A DNA stretch of 61,027 nucleotides, counting the filler, from Sluysia triapertura (taxonomy: Eukaryota): NCBI GenBank assembly GCA_046118255.1. It is 5 parts of 5 records of this genome, joined end to end, with 100 filler letters (N's around TTAATTAATTAA, not from the genome) between each part and the next. Parts side by side here need not be neighbours in the genome. Positions count along the whole stretch, not along the records: positions 36,407 to 48,941 come from JBJNIA010100880.1; 4 more parts are not named here. One strand, 5' to 3'. Of this stretch, positions 36,407 to 48,941 are shown piece by piece; the stretch's first letter is position 1, and each line of letters begins with the position of its first letter. Both the position numbers and the translations under genes were made by a program. Below the pieces are notes generated by a model. It searched no databases. It had not been told where the DNA came from and saw only the letters and a program-made list of their open reading frames with translations.

Positions 36407-36501
36407 TACATGTGTTTGTAAACGTTAATTACTTCATGGGTCTTAAGAGTTGTAGTTTCCTTTTAGTTACCAAATTATTAAATTATGTTAATTATTTCTA
36501 G

Positions 36502-39500
36502 CACGTGGAATGGTAAAGGAAACTACCCATAAAGGATTGTCAGTAATTAATGGTCTTTTACAAATCCAGTGTTCTCGAACCGGATGTCAGAGTAATCCCG
36601 TACCAGCTGCCAATTTTATTGGTTTAAAAGTATCTGGTACACTTATAGGTCAATTTAAATCATGTCACCATTGTTTTACATATTATTGTAGTGCTAAGTG
36701 TCGACTTGATGATTGGCCATATCACAAAAATGCATCGTGTTTAGCAGGTAAAGCATCATCATGTGCTAAGGCAGTTATTAGAAAGTTTATTTCTGATGAA
36801 AGTTAGTAAATCGATGTTTAAAATTTAACTTACTTATGAACAATTAACAAATTATAATTATTTATTCAATTATAATATGTAAGGTAGTATAAAGTTTTTG
36901 CGTCTCAAAAACATTAATCTTAAAAATCATGCATTGCATTATACTTCTTCAAGTTTATATTTCCTAAGCTTATGATATAATTCATAAAACTTGAATTATG
37001 CGCTGACTTTATTGACTGGTTATCCTACCCACATTAATAATGTTGCACTATGCAACATTAAACTAAAAACAAAAATTATGTTTAAATTACTTGATAATTA
37101 TAGAATAACTTAATAAGAACACATTATTGATTATCGAGTTTCTTAATCATGATTTATGTAACATTCATGTAATTACTAAAATAAAATTGAGTCATATTAT
37201 TAGATACAAATTTGGAAGCTCTAAATTATTGTCATTTTATTTGTTTTTAGAAATTTTAAAATTTTTTTAATTCACAAGTTTAATACAAAATTAAATGCCA
37301 AATCGTTTTTTGCGCTTCAATATTTATTGCAATAAACCGTTTTCATTTATATTAAACTGAAAGGCTATTTTCAATAAAACTGTGGTTTTATAAATATTAT
37401 TGTTTAAATGTAGGTAAATATTTAGTATTAATTAAATGCGTTTAACATATTGTATTGCTAATTAGTTTTTGTCGAACTTAACGCTCAGTAGGTTCAGTTG
37501 CAGTAGGTGGCTTAAAACATGCAGTAGACGTGTATGTAACTACGAAAAGGTAACTTCTCAACATCTCTCTAGCTTTTTTAATATCTTGATCACAATCAGC
37601 AATTAACTTATATTTCCTTCCTAGTGTTGATGTGGAATGATTAGTATCATCTCGTAACTGTTGTCGATTCTGTTCCTGTTCTAAATCGTTTCTCAGGGAA
37701 CAAAATACGACTATTTGTTGTGATATAAATTTTCCTGGTATGGAGTTAGCCGTAACTTCTTAAGATTTAGATTTCTCATGTTTATTATTTTGTTGAAAGA
37801 GAAAGATGTGTGATAGAGAGTTAGGAAGAAGTGAGAGTGAGGAAAAAAGTCATAGTAAAGAATTAAGAAGAGTTGAAATTGTTTTTATAGAAATTTCATT
37901 GTTGGTTAAGTTTTGAATTTTTTAACTATGAAGATTTTAAATTATTAAGATTTAATATATTGGGTTATTTAGTTGCTTGCGGTTGTGAGTTGTTCGATGC
38001 TTTGTGTGGTGGAATGAATTGGATCACCAAAATTTCAAGAAATGGCTACTCAAAATCGTTTAAAATATATCATTCTTTATAATATTTCGGAAATAAAAAA
38101 CGTTATCTCTCTTCTAGATGTTATTACTTATCAATAAATGAATAATAAGAACAACTTTTCGAATGTTTGATATTTTCTTTAATTGATATTTATTTTATTA
38201 TTAAAAATATATATTACATTATTGATTATATATGGAATTAGCACAATTTCATAAATTTCGGAATCGTAATATTATAAAATGAGTTTTGTATGGTTAAGTT
38301 TATACATTTTGGTTTATTTAAACAGTAATGGAAATGGTGATTTATTACCTCTCAGTAAAATGTGCCTAAATAATTCTATAATTATAAGTAATCGACAAAC
38401 GTTTCCAAATTGAAGGTAAAATTTATCAATGCACCTTAATACACAGTAAAAATCGCAAAACTTTTTATTTCTATTTTGAAAGTTTCGTCAAACCTGATTT
38501 ACAAATTACTGATGTAGCTGGTTTATCTAAAGTCGATATAATTGCTTAAGTGAGTACAAATTTCATTATTTCTATAGTAAACGGATTTAACTCTTTAAAT
38601 TGTCTCAAAATTTTTCACTACTAAATATACAAACACTTTACAGGGTACTCAAGAGGCTCTATGTGTTTTCATCTTCGCCACTCTGATTCCTTTTCCTACT
38701 TTTGTATTTTAATTATTAATGTGTCAAATTTATCTTTAATATTATTAACCATGACTTTAATTCTTGAACACTTCAAAGGTTCCAAAAGATCAACAATGTC
38801 TCAAATAAGCACCAGGTTCAAAAGTTCAAAGGTATCTTCATACTTCAAGGCATATTTCTAAACCTTAAGTCTTAAAACTTCATACCTTACAAAAGTTTTT
38901 GGAACTCAAAGGTATTCTTCGGTTTCAAATTGATTATAAACCTTTTGTTCATTATTTTTCTAGGAATATTTAATTATGTTTATATTATCATATTTCAGAT
39001 ATTTTATAGGCAATCCCAACATAATAACATTCTTGTAATTCTTTCAAGCCACGAGACACTAGTTGCACATAGATCTTCAGAAAATAAAAAATTCACAATT
39101 TTCATCTGCCTTTGTTGTATTCTTCTATGTTGATATAGTTTATTAACGCTTAATTGGTCATGAGCATCCACCTAGTAAGTTCAGAATCTTCACCTACAGC
39201 ATCTGCTTTGTCGTTAGGTTTATCTCGATTCAAGTTATTTTCTGGTTCGTACTTATCATCTGTTTCATGAGCTGGCTCTTTGTACTTTATATTCGGTTCA
39301 GCGTTAACTTTTATATTCGTCAAGTTTGATCTAACGTTGAACTCCTCATACTTAATCTTTAATTTATCACTTAACTGATCAGATTTAGCATTAAATTCGT
39401 GACACTTCATGTTTAGATTTAGATTCTACTTAGCGTATTTTATGATTAATCTAACATTTAATTCATACTTTAGCATCACACTTTATGTTTCGATTAAAAT

Positions 39501-42500
39501 TAGACTCATCACACTTTATGTTTACACTTTGTGTTTAGATTAACATCCACTTTTTATATTCAGACACTCGATTCATCATATTTTGTATTTATTTGAGCAC
39601 TCGACTCATCGAAGTTTATAAATAGATAGGCATTCGCCTGATGATTTATTGTATTAAGATTGTCATTTAGTTCAGCATAATTTACATTTGAATTCATTAC
39701 TAAAATAATGTTAATTTCTTTCACAAAATTGCGTTGTGAATATATTTTGTGATTATTGGCAGCCACATTTTATTCAATAATTTTCAGTTATTTTTACCTT
39801 TGCCTAATGTTTATTTGATTTTTCTGTCTTTTCTTATTTGTCTTTGTTCAAAGTTTTTTTATACATGCGCCTATAGTAATATTGATACACATATATCCAA
39901 TGAAATGTGAATTGGCATTGAGGTATTATTCGGTTTTATTCTTTTTTCTTCATTAAATTGATTTTCTAATATTTCTTTTGCTAACGTTTTGTTGTAAATA
40001 CTGATTCTTCGTATTATTCTATGCTCAGAGATTTATAATATTCGAGGTGCCGAGATTTAATCGCTGATAATCTTAAAGTGTTTATCATAAATAGTCTGTT
40101 CTAATTTGTGATCTAAGAGATGTTCTGTTTCCTTGTTTATATTTTTACTATTTCATGACGTGCCTGAAAATAATCGAGCTTCCGTTCTTATTTCTTCAAG
40201 AAGTTTTATTCTTATTTTAAGTGTTCAATCTTACATCATTTGAATATATTGTCATAACATTTATATTTGTTTGATGTAATGTTTTGTTGTGATGTGTTTA
40301 GCGATTGTTTTTCTTTCATTTTCTCTACCTAATTCTTTAAGTGAATTACTGAAATTGAAATATGCTCCACATTAATACACGATTGACGTTAAAGGGTTCT
40401 TCTCATTTTGATAATGGTTTTCGTTGTTTAATTTCATGAGAATCGTATACACGCTATTTTATTGTTTACTTTTACATTCGAATTTTCTAATTTCTGATTA
40501 ACTTTCTGTTAACAATGTTTCTTTTTCGCTTTATTCTTTATTTATTTTTGATCATGTTACTTGTTTATTAGTCAAATCACATAATGCTAGAAATGTAGAT
40601 TTCCTAAATGTAAATTTTCAGCTGTATATACTATCAAATTTGTTAACTTTTGAACCTATTTGTAGTAGTAACTCTTTCAGAATGTAAGATGTCTTTGCAT
40701 GCGAGAATTTACTCGAATTCAACTTGAAGTGAATTTGGTGTTTAAGATCTTTCGTATTGAGATAGGAAGAAATTTTATTATCAAGTTATTTTATTGTTTT
40801 ATGATGTTACTTTAAAAACTGATGGTTTTTATGTACTGAACTGTTTAAAAGTTCGTGATCAAAAATGTTAGAATGTTTGAGATTAAGGTTGTAAGTTTGT
40901 TCTAATGAGTTATATTTTGTTATGTCAAGATGTTGAATAAAATTTTGGGTAAAAGGTTGGGTCATCATAAGATGTTACCATGATAGTTGATATAAAATTT
41001 AGAAATATTATTTTTAAATTATTTATCTGCAATTATAGCTGATACCAATTATTGTGGTTATGACAAATGTGGTAAGATTAAAAATGGATATTACATACTA
41101 CAACAGGAGCAGTTATTTGGTGTATATCAGGATAAGTCGTGCTCAACCGAAAAAGAAAATAATTTTGTAAAGTATTGTGTTCCCATTGATGTCAGTTTAT
41201 TAAGAGTAATGATATGACGTTCAATTTGTGATGCTTCAGAAATAGAGTATTAAGAGTCGCAAGTGTGAGTATATTTGCGATGAAATAAGTTTTCATTTAA
41301 CTTTGAATAATAATCGGACTCACTAGAATAGTTGCATATTATAGAAGTTTTCTAGTGTTTAGATGTACATCTACAATCATAGGAAGGTCTTCTTTTAATA
41401 TTAACGTATTTGAGATTGACATTTGCAAATCGCGTTAATGTTTATCTTCATTCAATTCTTTAGATCTTGAGCTTAAAATATGTTTTTATGATATTTTTAT
41501 TATAAAAATATCGTTTAACAAATCTCATGCGTGTATAATTATCGTAAAAAGCTTTTGAATATTTCATGTTCATAACTATAATTGGTGATTATTATATTTT
41601 TAAATAATTTATCATTAACTATTATAAATTTCGAAATACTAATCGCTGGTTCACTTAAATTCAAATTATTTTAGCACTTAAACATTAGTAGATATTATGA
41701 TAAAACTTTAATTAATAAATACAAACTTAAAACATGCTTATTAATACAGAAGAATAAAATTTAAACACATAGTTACTTAGATATTTGTCAATTACCTTGT
41801 TGAATTGAGGCACAGTCAAAAACTTGGGATTTTGAAATGATTCACTAAATGATGTATCTAAATTTGACCTTAAAATATTTAAATAAGGTCTCAGCTTTGA
41901 AATATAATCTTTAGTCGCACAATATTCACTTACCTAATGTAAATGAGTCAAACACTGAACTGTAACATTCATATAAGAGGAATCCATCTAAACCTAAAGT
42001 TATAGCTTGATTATCATGCGTACTTTTTTAATTTTTAAAATCTTCAAATTAAATCAGTACATAAATACTTCTAACAGTCTGAGTGTCCTGAATTACGTCT
42101 GTAAAATCAATACGCTGTGATGCTTGCATATGAATCCAGAATAACAAAACTTGAATCATTTCTGTTAAAATGTTTTAATTACATGAGGTGATAAATCAAT
42201 ATGTTTATAATAAAAACAAATACATGTTATTTAATTACTAACATAATCTTTTCTCCTTGACCAACAATGCTTGGAGAACAGTCTTATTTTTTGGTAATGT
42301 AAATGTTCGTACCACAAAAAAATTTAATTTTCAAATTTTCCATATTTTATGTATTTATTTATGAGGTGTTTGTGTTTGTTTCTTCATTTTTATTTTAACA
42401 AAACCATAGATATTTTATTTTGATGCTATCGACTTATTCGTAACCTTGGCGAGTTGTTAAGAAGGTATATATGCAGGTCTTCCGCACTTTTTTTGCTTTT

Positions 42501-44428
42501 TTGATTTAATTTGATATTAATTTTAAAATTACTAAGTTATTCTTTTTCAAATAATTTTATCTTAAGATGATTAAGATATGATATATTTTTATAAACTTAA
42601 TCTCAAAGCAAGCTAATGTCGCTTGATTACGTACATTTTTAATGTTTCTTTACAATGAATATAATTTTATAGTAATGTTATGATTTATTATTCAAAATAT
42701 AACTCCATTTTTTTATATTAATTCTTAAGACTTACAATCAATATTATCATTGTTAGCTCGAGAAGGATATTCACAGTTAGGTCGCGGTTGTCTAGTCATG
42801 TGGGTGTCAGATTCAGACAAAATAAACTCTTTTATACAATCACCAGATCCAGATTTAAAAATATTGAACCCTGCTTATGTTAGTTTAAAAACAGCACAAA
42901 TCCTTATCCAAACAGTATCACCAAAAGCACTTTCTACTGTTATTGAAGCTTGTACAAAGTAAATTCTTAATTATATTTAAATGCACAAATCATACAATTT
43001 AAAAATTCAAGTGTGAAATAAATAAAATAGTATTATGTATACAATATAATAAAATAAAATAGATATTTTAATAAAGGTATAATCCATCGAAACATGTTGT
43101 TATTACTGTGTCTGTTAGGTTGAATATACCAAACATAAGTCCTTTAATCAAGCAACATCCAGTAATGCGTTACAAACGCTTGAATGCAATAAAAAAGTGT
43201 GCTATATTACCCTTGAGTCAATTGAATTCTCAACCAAAACGTACTACTCCAATTTTAAAACCAGCTTCATTATTACTCACGAAACTTCCAAATATTAATA
43301 ATAATTGTCAATGTAAAAATGGCGCTCATTACAATTCTGAAGTAGAAGCTAAACTAGCGGTTGTAAATGCACTTAGATTACTAGAAGGGTATGGTGTAGA
43401 TTTTCGACGTGACTATCCTGAAGAGTATAAACGATTGATTGATTATGCTGATGGAAAATGTCACTTTTTACAGCCAAAGACTATTTATCCGGTTAGTAAA
43501 TAATTTGTTGGAATCAATTCAAATTTTATTTGACAATATAAATGTAATTTATGTTGATAATTTAAATAATTAATGAACAATTTAAATATTTTAATATTTT
43601 AAGCAAAAATGTTTGAATCTTTTCAGCGTTGAGTTTTATATTCTTTTATATTTTATATAAGGTTGTAAAGCAGTTTGGTTATGATATTGTTTAAATAATT
43701 GTGTTCATAGTAATTAAATAATTATTAATTTAAAAGACAAAATTAAATAGTCAGATTAATTAATAATATTAATGTAGTTAAATATTCAAGTATTTTGATT
43801 TTTACTAAAATTCTAATAATAAAAATAATAATCATAATCATAATAATGGTGATAGTTATTTAGAAATTTAGTTATTTTATTTTATTTAGTTATTTTATTT
43901 TCTATTATTTGTTAGACTTCGTAAAATGGACTGACCGGGGATCGAACCCGGGACCATCGCTGTGTAGTTCGAATGCTCTACCACTGAGCTATCAGCCCCG
44001 TCAAACAATTTCATTTTTAATATATTCAGTTACACTACTTGGCACTTTTTAGGCCTTTTACCCCAACATATTTACAATTATGTATCTAGTAATAGTAATC
44101 TTGGTGTAATTCATTTAATTAAATGTAGTGCAGTTTATAAAAATATAAATCTAAATAAATCAAAATTTTGAGTTCATTTGAGTATTTATTTGATTACCTA
44201 AGTAAAATTAATTACTTTTAATTGTAGATAAATAAAGAAACTGGTAAACAATTTATTGTGCTTATTGCACCAGAAGCATATAATACAAATGATGAATTCA
44301 GTTTACTCAAAGTCTCACCGAAAATTTCCATGAATATTGCATTTCCAACTAATAATATTGTATCACATTTTGATGCTTTAATATCATCATGGGATGAAAC
44401 ATCAAAAGCAGAAATAACTTGTGTCTAA
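36502..44428 (+). CDS. AJM1: Apical junction component 1 (AJM1)-like protein, last four exons (36502-36801, 42730-42958, 43077-43491, 44228-44428)
   Basis: MYND-like finger [25 protein letters not shown]..C, then LSLLAREGYSQLGRGC, KYNP, IKKCAIL, TIYP|INKETGKQF...PEA. All junctions are GT-AG and in phase. Stop at 44426-8, AATAAA at 44492. Confidence 0.85.
38630..39010 (+). repeat. Dispersed repeat R (inverted copies at 50190-50720 and 48380-48575), linked to Penelope-like remnants
   Basis: Shared TTTTCA.CTTC.CC.CTCTGATTC...TCAAATT.ATCTTTAATATTATTAACCATGACTTTAATTCTTGAA...TTCAAAGGTATCTTCAT.CTTCAAG. Confidence 0.85.
43927..43998 (-). pseudogene. tRNA-like sequence (tRNA pseudogene or SINE head) in an AJM1 intron
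   Basis: GGGCTGATAGCTCAGTGGTAGAGCA-TTCGAACTACACAGCGA-TGGTCCCGGGTTCGATCCCCGGTCAGTCCA. Acceptor, D and T arms and A/B boxes are intact but the anticodon arm is broken. A second copy with shared flanks is at ~1027. Confidence 0.8.
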
Positions 44429-44543
44429 CTATATTTGCTGTTGAAATTTTGTAATTATTCTTATAATGTATATAATTATTATATCAAGATAAATAAAATG
44501 TCTGTGAATATATAAGCTAACGATAATTGTATAAAAATATAAT

Positions 44544-44733
44544 NNNNNNNNNNNNNNNNNNNNNNNNNNNNNNNNNNNNNNNNNNNNNNNNNNNNNNNNN
44601 NNNNNNNNNNNNNNNNNNNNNNNNNNNNNNNNNNNNNNNNNNNNNNNNNNNNNNNNNNNNNNNNNNNNNNNNNNNNNNNNNNNNNNNNNNNNNNNNNNNN
44701 NNNNNNNNNNNNNNNNNNNNNNNNNNNNNNNNN
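44544..44733. other. Intra-scaffold assembly gap (190 N)
   Basis: N run without the linker 12-mer. Confidence 0.97.
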
Positions 44734-44986
44734 AATATTAAACAGACAATTTTAAAATATAATCAAAATAATATTCAAAAAATAAAATAATATTTTTAAA
44801 ATTAATATAATAAAAATATTATTTTACAAAGGCTTAAAAGCCCTGACGCAATTGTAATAAAAGTACATATGCGTAAAACTGTTAATAACTTTTAGGGTCA
44901 TAAAAATAATAATAAAGGAGCAGAGACGCATTGAAAACGCGAAAATTTACAAGTGAATAAAGACTAAATTTAACAACGATATTATT

Positions 44987-45432
44987 TAAATAATAACTTT
45001 ATTTTTGAGAAAAACAATAATTCTGTTTAATGCACAACACGAGATTTTAATCACTAGATCTATATTAGTTTGAGTCTTATTATTATTATCATATCTTGTT
45101 AGACTTTTACTCCTATTCCTATTAAAACTAGAACTTGGTGGCCATCTCGGTGCTGGTCTTTGTTCATAATTAGAAGCACCATAATTACTTACTCTATTTT
45201 GGAATCCTCTATTATTATTTCCTCTATAATTATTTGAGTTACCCCTGTAATTGTTTGAACTATTTCTTCTATAATTACTTGAATTTCTTCTAAAATTATC
45301 ATTACTTCTATAATTGTTATTGCCTCTGTAATTATTTGAATTATTATTGCCTCTGTGTGGGCTATTACGTCGTTCCCGACTATAATTATTATCATATTCT
45401 TCATAATTAGAAATGATTAAGAAAAATATGAT
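44987..45432 (-). other. Open frame (~145 codons, no start codon) rich in R/G/N/Y repeats
   Basis: EYDNNYSRERRNSPHRGNNNSNNYRGNNNYRSNDNFRRNSSNYRRNSSNNYRGNSNNYRGNNNRGFQNR...EQRPAPRWPPSS. The ORF track shows a different frame here. Confidence 0.55.
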
Positions 45433-46146
45433 TTAAATTGGGAATTTTAAGTATAATTCTTCTTACACGATATTTGCATAGATTTACATATTTTATATTT
45501 GCATATAAGATCTGGATGTCTGGTGTATGAATGTTTAAAGAAATAATGTTATAAATTGTGAATATTAAGCTTCACAATGTGTAAGACACTATTTAGTGAT
45601 TTTTAAAGGTGTAATACGAAGTGAGTTTACTGAATTATGTTGTAGTAACATCGTAATATTGAATAATATTGTATAATTTATATGAGTTATTGCTGATCTG
45701 CAGGATCAGTTCGTTAGGGTATCGTAAGGTATTGTGAGAATTATGATTATGAGAACTGTGAACCATTGATACTAACAGTTAATAACATAAAATATATTTA
45801 TTATTTTTATTATTTGTGAATTATTACATTTAATTATTACATTTATTATTTTATTAACTTATTAATTTTTATTATACCTAATAAATTTAATAAATTTTTA
45901 TACTTAATAAATTTAACAAATTAAATAAATCATTAAAATTTTTATATTTAGTAAATTAGATAAAATTAAAATTTTATTTTCATTTTTGTTTAAATGGATT
46001 AATTTTGAAAAATAGTAAAATTTTGTATACAAGAATTTGAAATTCTAACAAAATTTTCACAAGTCATGTACCGGAAATTAAATTCAATCGTCACGGAAAA
46101 TTTAAATTTTCATGTCTAAAGTAAGATTTTATTTCTTAAGGTGTGT

Positions 46147-46474
46147 ATTCTCACCGTAACTGGGAGAATTAAAATATTTAATTTCTTTCTAGTTAGACCG
46201 TAACTGGCTAAGTTAATATTTATCTAAAATCATCACGCGAAATCTTCTGACTTAAGTGTTAAATTGTGTATTATTATTATAATTTGCTTTCCATTGTAAT
46301 TGTACTAATATCTTGCATTCATCTTTGTAAAATTTCATAATACACCTTGAATACGTGTCTGTTTATTTATTAATAAATAAAATATCATTTTATCCACGCT
46401 AGACCGTAATAAGGCCAGCTAAATATCTTAAAATATATAAAAGAAGTTTTGTAATTAGACAGTAAAAGGGCTAA
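46147..46474 (-). other. Cluster of four hairpins with different stems and a shared loop
   Basis: Plus strand: ATTCTC-ACCGTAACTGG-GAGAAT, TTAG-ACCGTAACTGG-CTAA, GCTAG-ACCGTAATAAGG-CCAGC, TTAG-ACAGTAAAAGGG-CTAA. Confidence 0.6.
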
Positions 46475-47537
46475 CTTAAAATCTCATAAATTATAATTAT
46501 TATTAATTAAAGAATTATTACGTATTAATAACATAACAAATAAACGCTGCTACAAGACTATTTTCATAACATATGTGAGTAATCACAAAATACGTGACTT
46601 TTCTAAATTTGAATTGCACCACTTCCTGAAAGCCTAATAGACCGCCTTCGATAAGATATAAGACGTTTCTGTGAAGTGGACTCACCTCCAAAATTATATT
46701 TTGCACTTTATAAGTTTTATAAGATAAAACCATCGCAGTATGAATTTTCTTCTGTGACATATAATTATACGGTTTTTCAGTAAGTGTGAGTCTGACATGA
46801 ATTCAACGATCTGTGTGGTAATTATGCTTACTAAGTCTGCTTACATATATTTTTCTATAGTCGTAGACGTGATATCTTGCGATATTAAGCCACTGTCATT
46901 AATTTCATTTTTCAAATAATTATAGCGTTGGAAGTTTTAATTTTTAAATTATTATTATTGTTTGTTGATATTATGTATTATTATGTAAAAATAAAAAGTT
47001 TTAATATTGTAAAAATAAAAATTGTAAATTATTGTAAAGATAAAAATAAATGTATTTTATAGAATTACTATTAAATTAGATAAAAATAAATGTATTTTTA
47101 ATAAAAATTATTGAATTACATTGAAATTATTATTATAAAATAAAATTATTATTATTTATATTAAAAATAGAATTATTATTTAAAAATTATGTATTAATAT
47201 TAAAACAAATAAATATTATTATTATTTTAAATATTTAAAACTTAGCAACTAAATATTATTAATTCATTATTTGTTTGTAGATACGTAAATTCAAGTCATA
47301 AATTGGTAACATTTATATACAACATCAAATTATTTTATAACGTTTAATAACTAGATATTAATTATAGATTAATATTATTAAATATTTATTGTCATAATAT
47401 AACCGTAAGCGAACTTTAACTCCTGTATAATATTTTGTGTGTGACTTTTTATGATTTTTTACTATTAAAATTTAATGTTGTAATATATAATTCTGTTTGA
47501 CACTTTATAAGCACAATTGATTTTTAAAATTTTTAAA

Positions 47538-47620
47538 TTTGAATTAACATTTTATATCTAAAGATTGAATTAACATTTTGTATCTAAAGTTTGAATTAAT
47601 ATTCTATATCTAAAGTTTGT
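47538..47620 (+). repeat. Minisatellite, 3 x ~27 bp
   Basis: TTGAATTAA(C/T)ATT...TATCTAAAG repeated three times. Confidence 0.85.
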
Positions 47621-47892
47621 ATAATTGTTTTAAATTTTTTTTGTATTTGATTTAATATTTGGTGTTTTTAATAAATAATTATAATACTAAAGTTTGTGTT
47701 TTTGATAATCATTAACATTTTGAGTAAGATAAATTTTTGAATAAAATAATATTTGATTTAATACTTTATATTCTTTTAAATAGTGATTATACTGAGCTTA
47801 TTTTCTAAATTATAATAAATTATTCATCAAGAAAATTCAATAAGTATCTGGATCTAGGAAATAGGCAGAATCAAGAATAAATATAAACATAA

Positions 47893-47979
47893 ACCTCCAG
47901 TTCTTATCTTTCCTTTCTTAAGCTGCGAATCTATGTGCTGGCCCTTCAGTGAGTAAGTCCAGTGTCATAGAGAACTTAC
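47893..47979 (+). ncRNA. Structured dispersed motif, copy D
   Basis: ACCTCCAG...CTATG TGCTGG [CCCTTCAGTGAGTAAGT] CCAGTG T CATAG AGA ACTTAC. Confidence 0.6.
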
Positions 47980-48379
47980 GTTAAGAATAAGGCATCTAAT
48001 TTAAAGCGAATATCCATTCTTAATTATACAAAATCTCCACAATTATATTATTAATATTATCATTATCATTATCATTCTTATTATTATTAAGATTGAAAAA
48101 TGGATGAAAAATCAATACAAAGTGATGTGCAGAGCATAATAAAACACTTGGAGTGAAAATGAGAATGGAAGAATATCTTGGAATTTCAAACACTTTTATA
48201 AGTTTTTTGAGATCATTGAGGAAGCTTGAGAATGGTTTGGAAATACGTTTTGAAGCGTTAAATTACCTCTGAAATTGTGAATCTTGAGCTCATCGATGAC
48301 CTCAGCCATCTTTAAGAATGCCTGAAATTTTGATAAGCATTTCAGTCCTTTGTGTAACCTTTTAAAGTACTTGAAATCT

Positions 48380-48780
48380 TTAAAATATTTGAGAAATGTA
48401 ACTACTGTTACCAATATTTAAGATAAATTTGACACATTAACAATAATAGTAATGTATCAGATTGGCGAAGGTGAAAAAGTCTAGAACCGTTTGAGTGCCT
48501 TAGAAACCTTTAGGCATACAGCAAGACTAAGTTTAAAAATAACTTAATTAAGAAAAAAGTACATTTTTATGAATAACATTTGAATGTGGAATTCTGTCGA
48601 AGTTGCAACTGTATGTTTGTTTCTATGAAGATATGTTTGACTGAGTCTTAATAATGAACAAAGTCAGATTTTAATTAATTCTCAATTATAGAATGTTGAA
48701 TTTTTCATACTTATATGAAAAAAAGATAATGAATTGAGCATTAGATGATTTTTATAATAGAGAATAATCTAGAAATGAAT
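48380..48780 (-). mobile_element. Deleted derivative of the Penelope-like unit at 50190-52080
   Basis: 48400-48575 aligns to ~50490-50725, then jumps to align with ~51490-51700. Confidence 0.7.
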
Positions 48781-48941
48781 TGTTTCTCAATTAATTATCT
48801 TAAAAATAGTTTTTAACTAAAATTGCGAAGGGAGTTTTTTATCAACTCACCTTAAAAATAGCTTAAAAATTAACTAAAAATGACACAATATTAAAATTAT
48901 TCAAATTGAAATAACATTAATTACTTATATTATTTTAATAA

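Follow-up and report, generated by a model that had tools for sequence, protein, structure and literature searches.

The closest described systems to the locus considered here are the 3' tails of stringent-type LINEs and SINEs. In these retroposons, a conserved 3' tail of ~60 nt contains a stem-loop with a functionally required bulge; recognition by the ORF2 protein is loop-specific and stem-generic, and related elements keep the stem structure (PMC1636434; PMC4176376). A second point of reference is provided by spliced-leader (SL) RNAs. There, a GU donor follows a short 5' exon in stem-loop I and is embedded in a hairpin made of exon and intron sequence, an Sm site (AU4-6G or close variants) lies between stem-loops, and the genes form multi-copy families that include variant families (PMC7986045). 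The locus compared with these systems lies in a 61,027-nt window of joined Sluysia triapertura sequence, within the 12.5-kb piece at positions 36407-48941. An initial annotation of the window had described six copies of a hairpin motif, with a conserved loop and tail and with stems that differ yet remain paired, and had proposed a new ribozyme or an RNA recognized by a reverse transcriptase (RT).

The copy at 47930-47979 (+) is present as described there. It consists of a 5' arm UCUAUGUGCUGG (47930-47941), a 17-nt loop CCCUUCAGUGAGUAAGU (47942-47958), a 3' arm CCAGUG-U-CAUAGA (47959-47971), and a tail GAACUUAC (47972-47979), with the arms taken from the minimum free energy (MFE) fold and the loop and tail read directly. 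The stem comprises 12 pairs, with a single bulged U at 47965 and two adjacent G-U pairs, G47937-U47963 and U47936-G47964. Both wobbles exist on the + strand only, and on the minus strand they turn into C-A/A-C mismatches. Folding of both strands returned an MFE of -12.9 kcal/mol for the + strand hairpin and a minus-strand version interrupted by an internal loop. Hence, the two G-U pairs of the folding model favor the + strand as the probable RNA strand, and the proposed confinement of wobbles to one strand holds for this copy.

The heptamer ACCUCCA at 47893-47899 (+) lies 30 nt 5' of the stem, within the 20-70 nt upstream range previously given for AC(C/A)UCCA. The degenerate form AC[CA]TCCA occurs five times on the two strands of piece 36407-48941, so the heptamer by itself says little. 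A pyrimidine-rich tract ending in AG, GUUCUUAUCUUUCCUUUCUUAAG (47900-47922, +), resembles a 3' splice site and is located just 5' of the hairpin. Directly 3' of the tail, the sequence continues as GUUAAGAAUAAGG, free of any repeat. A possible second, weak and AU-rich hairpin, UUAAGAAUAAGG / CCAUUCUUAA (47981-48023, +), appears in the MFE structure of a 171-nt stretch and is missing from the centroid structure of the same stretch, and it is regarded as a low-confidence feature.

The genomic setting is very AT-rich, with 11-32% G+C in 500-nt windows across piece 36407-48941. On a finer scale, the composition profile reveals an island of 30-53% G+C, ~100-190 nt long, at 47840-48030, between flanks of 7-20% G+C. 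An inserted or functional unit of that length would fit such an island. Around the hairpin, each of the six frames contains stop codons, no Pfam-bearing ORF is found near it, and no RT or endonuclease domain is encoded in the 12.5-kb piece. No long ORFs were recovered in piece 36407-48941 under any genetic code tried; those that the ciliate code produces in every frame look like AT-rich noise, and that code was rejected. Reading of the sequence found no Pol III features, whether A/B boxes or a T-run terminator. Both strands carry splice-like signals, and no exon is detectable to either side. A candidate 8-bp direct repeat, AAGAATAA, at 47873-47880 and 47983-47990 is at chance level, and the short flanking repeat TTAAG at 47918-47922 and 47981-47985 (+) is likewise expected by chance in this composition.

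Comparison with curated RNA families yielded no assignment. An Rfam 15 cmscan of the 12.5-kb piece at E<=10 left the motif unmatched, and a scan of the 211 nt from 47850 to 48060 came back empty; the families unmatched at the motif include ribozymes, SL RNAs, snRNAs, and SmY. Elsewhere in the piece, the matches at E<=10 are the tRNA at 43927-43998 and two snoRNA matches at chance level. The initial annotation had called for such a comparison, and the lack of any ribozyme or other family match at this threshold goes against its ribozyme proposal. Because no curated family matches, the hairpin does not belong to a known gene class.

Further copies were sought by sequence and by structure. With up to two mismatches allowed, the loop 16-mer occurs once in piece 36407-48941, at its own site, and a search with up to four mismatches plus sub-motifs added one unrelated, AT-rich site at 38543. 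A covariance model seeded with the single structure at 47930-47979, and run on the piece with filters off, scored 83.7 bits on its own locus, and no other site in the piece exceeded 8 bits. Metagenome and viral contigs contained the loop 17-mer at 64 loci, where the model reached at most 26.5 bits; none of these loci has the stem or the tail, and they are regarded as chance matches. Across the piece and 65 fetched loci, the model identified no further copy. The loop-plus-tail pattern gave 0 matches in 596 Gb of prokaryote genomes. None of these metagenome, viral, and prokaryote scans returned the hairpin's own copy, so the collections do not hold this genome. Full-text literature searches for the loop and stem strings returned nothing relevant. 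The hairpin, if real, is thus an undescribed element that nothing known matches by sequence or by structure model. One stem listed in the initial annotation may resemble the bdelloid rotifer leader. A decayed second copy considered at 39065-39110, beside a ~330-nt inverted repeat, aligned with a background score, and partial look-alikes therefore arise easily in this AT-rich DNA. Selection on structure is argued from the compensatory stem changes claimed for the six copies reported earlier, one of which lies in piece 36407-48941.

Within this frame, we tentatively interpret the hairpin as a cis-module conserved within a retroposon-type short interspersed repeat, which could be a SINE or a non-LTR element truncated at its 5' end. 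Even so worded, it is one possibility among several. Among kinds of element, a structured interspersed-repeat module is the most probable here, and it is a known kind. The module would act as + strand RNA, in which a 12-bp hairpin with a hinge-like single bulge displays a fixed 17-nt loop and is followed by a fixed 8-nt tail. By analogy with stringent-type LINE/SINE 3' tails, the ORF2/RT protein of a partner element would make specific contacts with the loop and generic ones with the stem, and reverse transcription would start near the tail. This proposal would account for a loop and tail that are conserved next to a stem that needs only to remain paired. We infer that the element is a repeat, that it was retroposed, and that an RT recognizes it. 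Observations counted in favor are the hairpin itself, the + strand bias, the G+C island, the non-coding setting, the lack of a match to known families, and the further dispersed or tandem repeats that adjoin the hairpin in the piece. A retroposon tail would also be in keeping with the reported distribution, in which many copies occur per 50 kb in both orientations, reach to different points on the 5' side, and include a 3' fragment. The "RT-recognition RNA" half of the initial proposal, which is close to this reading, appears plausible.

Eel UnaL2 and UnaSINE1-2 and zebrafish ZfL2-1/-2 likewise present a module of roughly 50-60 nt, with a single-bulge hairpin, a protein-readable loop, and a short fixed 3' sequence, and the bulged U47965 and tandem G-U pairs supply the bulge or hinge expected of a stringent-type tail (PMC1636434). 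UnaL2 has a 5-nt loop, whereas the loop here is three times longer at 17 nt. UnaL2-type elements end in [UGUAA]n, whereas no terminal tandem repeat follows the tail here; neither a terminal A-run nor a target-site duplication was found, the best repeat being the chance-level AAGAATAA. Stringent-type tails are served by a partner LINE, whereas no RT or LINE is seen in the piece. In zebrafish L2-clade tails, it is the stems that resemble one another and the loops that differ, which is the reverse of the pattern reported for the present motif. The missing RT or endonuclease remnant and the chance-level candidate duplication count against a retroposon origin. The hairpin may therefore work like a stringent-type LINE/SINE tail, an analogy in mode of action that does not class it as a member.

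The loop itself has a property that a retroposon module does not predict and leaves unexplained. It contains two consensus 5' splice-donor hexamers that overlap, GUGAGU (47949-47954) and GUAAGU (47953-47958), and its duplex with the textbook 5' end of U1 is predicted at -7.3 kcal/mol. The tail ACUUAC (47974-47979) is the exact complement of the loop GUAAGU, with 6/6 Watson-Crick pairs, and it also pairs 6/6 with the loop GUGAGU through one G-U. The previously noted 6/6 complementarity between GUGAGU and the tail is thus upheld for this copy. For a single copy, a complementarity of 6/6 between tail and loop is estimated to arise by chance with a probability of roughly 1-10%. The consensus donor and its complementary tail open readings absent from the initial annotation.

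The loop-tail complementarity had been interpreted as an H-type pseudoknot, and this part of the proposal does not hold up well. In classical H-type geometry (Pleij-type rules), the loop that crosses the shallow groove must be long enough for stem 1. Here, stem 1 has 12 pairs, and the linker from the 3' arm to ACUUAC measures 2-3 nt (47972-47973, or from 47971). The pseudoknot is sterically doubtful because this linker would need to cross the shallow groove of the entire 12-bp stem. The loop-tail helix by itself contributes about -4 kcal/mol, and a nested structure that includes it reaches -6.9 kcal/mol against -12.9 kcal/mol for the hairpin, i.e., 6 kcal/mol weaker. At best, pairing between loop and tail would yield a weaker, alternative conformer. 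If the complementarity matters, it acts as a switch or between molecules.

The same evidence bears on several competing explanations. The hairpin might be incidental, that is, part of an ordinary repeat fragment or of unique non-coding DNA whose stem is under no selection, and apparent co-variation could then arise from subfamily structure, from an alignment made without tools, or from one arm having been copied from the other. Fold statistics lend this view some weight. The hairpin ranks 4th by stability among 8172 sliding 45-nt windows (both strands, 12.5-kb piece), and about eight further loci, the tRNA included, reach -12 to -13 kcal/mol in 45-nt windows and fold equally well. The z-scores against shuffles are near 0 for stretches of 93 and 171 nt. 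Taken as a single hairpin, the structure is only mildly beyond chance; it is notable and unexceptional. The exact loop 16-mer had 0 occurrences in 100 shuffles, which shows just that the sequence is not low-complexity. The background-level look-alike at 39065-39110 and the lack of a homologue in metagenome, viral, and prokaryote collections, which do not contain this genome, point the same way. An incidental origin nevertheless sits poorly with a G+C-rich stem in a 7-20% G+C setting, with stem mismatches that are both G-U on one strand, and with the exact 6/6 complementarity of tail and loop. Neutrality would also be unlikely if the four different yet paired stems reported earlier are real. 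On balance, an incidental hairpin is a somewhat unlikely explanation, though the next most probable after the retroposon module. A new self-cleaving ribozyme, formed by the hairpin and a loop-tail pseudoknot, is by comparison highly improbable. The 6/6 complementarity of loop and tail would suit such an RNA, and with no known family matching, it would be a new one. Against this, even a permissive Rfam scan gave no ribozyme family, and the covariance models of hammerhead, HDV-like, twister, twister-sister, pistol, hatchet, hairpin, VS, and hovlinc ribozymes found nothing at the motif. The 2-3 nt linker cannot span the 12-bp stem in classical H-type geometry, the nested alternative lies 6 kcal/mol above the hairpin, and the motif has none of the conserved internal loops or junctions that characterize catalytic cores. 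The conserved letters are, moreover, fully accounted for as a splice donor and its complement. The ribozyme half of the initial proposal thus finds support in the loop-tail complementarity and nowhere else.

Three further explanations take the splice-like signals at face value. The locus could be a + strand gene for a spliced-leader-like or other small nuclear RNA, whose short 5' exon would form the 5' arm with its 3' part and whose donor (A|GUGAGU or GA|GUAAGU) would be displayed in the loop as in SL RNA stem-loop I. Differing stems would then be leader variants with compensating intron changes, and the donor would be hidden or exposed through the ACUUAC tail. The consensus donor does lie in the loop of a hairpin built from upstream and downstream sequence; the favored strand is the expected one, TATAAA is found at 47879-47884, about 65 nt 5' of the donor, and multi-copy families with variants are known for SL RNA genes (PMC7986045). 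Yet no canonical Sm site (AT{4,6}G or listed variants) occurs 20-60 nt 3' of the donor, where the nearest Sm-like string, AAUUUAAAG (47998-48006), is non-canonical and falls within the loop of the weak hairpin. SL, snRNA, and SmY families are unmatched at E<=10, the 3'-splice-site-like tract directly upstream is unexpected for an SL gene, TATA-like strings are ubiquitous in this DNA, and conservation was reported to stop at the tail. We consider an SL-like gene unlikely. The donor motif in a hairpin loop also recalls, by analogy only, the major splice-donor hairpin of retroviral leaders such as HIV-1 SL2, a hairpin of a retroelement RNA that displays a GGUGAGUA-type donor in its loop; here the stem is much longer, and no primer-binding site, LTR, or gag/pol is found nearby. 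Less probable than an SL-like gene is an undescribed family of small RNAs or retroelement-borne modules that combine a loop-displayed 5' splice donor with a U1-like anti-donor (ACUUAC) in cis. If such a family existed, the donor could switch between exposed and masked states, for example, in an Sm-site-less spliced-leader system with many leaders or in a mobile element serving as a "portable splice donor" for the capture of exons downstream. Finally, the motif may be read on the minus strand as an introner, whose copies would be transposon-borne introns. From 47979 to 47923, the minus strand reads GUAAGUUC...ACUUACUCAC...UUCGCAG over 57 nt; the consensus donor starts at the first nucleotide, a box resembling UACUAAC follows, and CAG closes the unit. 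The conserved tail described earlier ends exactly at the bases that read GU on this strand, and CUUAA(C/G) stands on both sides (CTTAAC / CTTAAG on the minus strand). Transposon-derived intron families are reportedly documented, and the GU...AG borders, branch-site-like box, short flanking direct repeat, and reported multiple copies all resemble them. Still, no open frame flanks the unit on the minus strand in any phase, with stops in all three frames on both sides; no gene is detectable there, and no Pfam-bearing ORF lies nearby that it could interrupt in sense orientation with exons continuing on either side. The G-U pairs favor the other strand, the 5-nt flanking repeat is expected by chance, and at 57 nt the unit looks shorter than known introner families. 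This explanation is accordingly very unlikely. Under the retroposon interpretation, which we continue to prefer, the resemblance of the loop to a splice donor may be a coincidence or may be of use to the element.

The significance of the locus depends on the stem changes reported among its copies. If the co-variation holds genome-wide, the motif would represent a clean natural example of an RNA hairpin that selection maintains within an element that is mobile or multi-copy, in a eukaryote whose genome is AT-rich and poorly assembled, and it would offer a handle on which reverse transcriptase or splicing machinery reads the hairpin. A functional donor in the loop would allow the element to create or regulate splice sites at its places of insertion. 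If the co-variation fails, an ordinary repeat fragment is left.

Other features of piece 36407-48941 are recorded here in their own right. Repeats are found at several places. A ~330-nt dispersed inverted repeat occurs at 38644-38920 (+) and 48499-48168 (-), ~9.5 kb apart; its copies share 69-72% identity (E 2e-12 and 2e-7), look non-coding, and have no classification, and about 190 nt separate the end of the right-hand copy from the hairpin. A 26-nt tandem repeat of 3-4 units, AAAGWTTGAATTAAYATTYTRTATCT, lies at 47535-47631 (+), ~300 nt 5' of the hairpin, and a 40-nt tandem duplication is located farther upstream at 47038-47117 (+). A tRNA-like gene at 43927-43998 (-) scores 49.9 bits with the Rfam tRNA model. 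Its acceptor, D, and T arms are good, its anticodon arm is unpaired, ARAGORN names no anticodon, and TTTT follows; it looks like a tRNA pseudogene or the head of a tRNA-derived repeat, Cys-like by eye.

A protein gene lies ~4.4 kb upstream of the hairpin and encodes an AJM-1-like protein with a MYND zinc finger in three + strand exons (36492-36803, 42729-42959, and 43075-43500). In an exhaustive search, these ORFs were colinear with residues 136-208, 210-282, and 285-414 of transcriptome protein P0001, which carries precomputed Pfam matches to Ajm-1 and AJM1_C. One intron measures about 5.9 kb and the other, which reads GTAAAT...AAAG, about 115 nt. The gene thus points to an intron-rich eukaryote, probably an animal. 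Another stable hairpin, at 41255-41282 (+) and within the 5.9-kb intron, reaches -12.9 kcal/mol in its 45-nt window. Its loop also carries a splice-donor-like string, GUGAGUAU; it has no ACUYAC tail and no loop sequence in common with 47930-47979. The large intron further contains a perfect 10-bp palindromic hairpin at 37017-37041 (-/+), TAATGTTGCA-(3 nt)-TGCAACATTA. At 44989-45432 (-), a 148-codon open frame without a Pfam match is rich in N, R, G, S, and Y and contains NNYRGNN repeats; by its composition, it resembles an RGG-type low-complexity exon.
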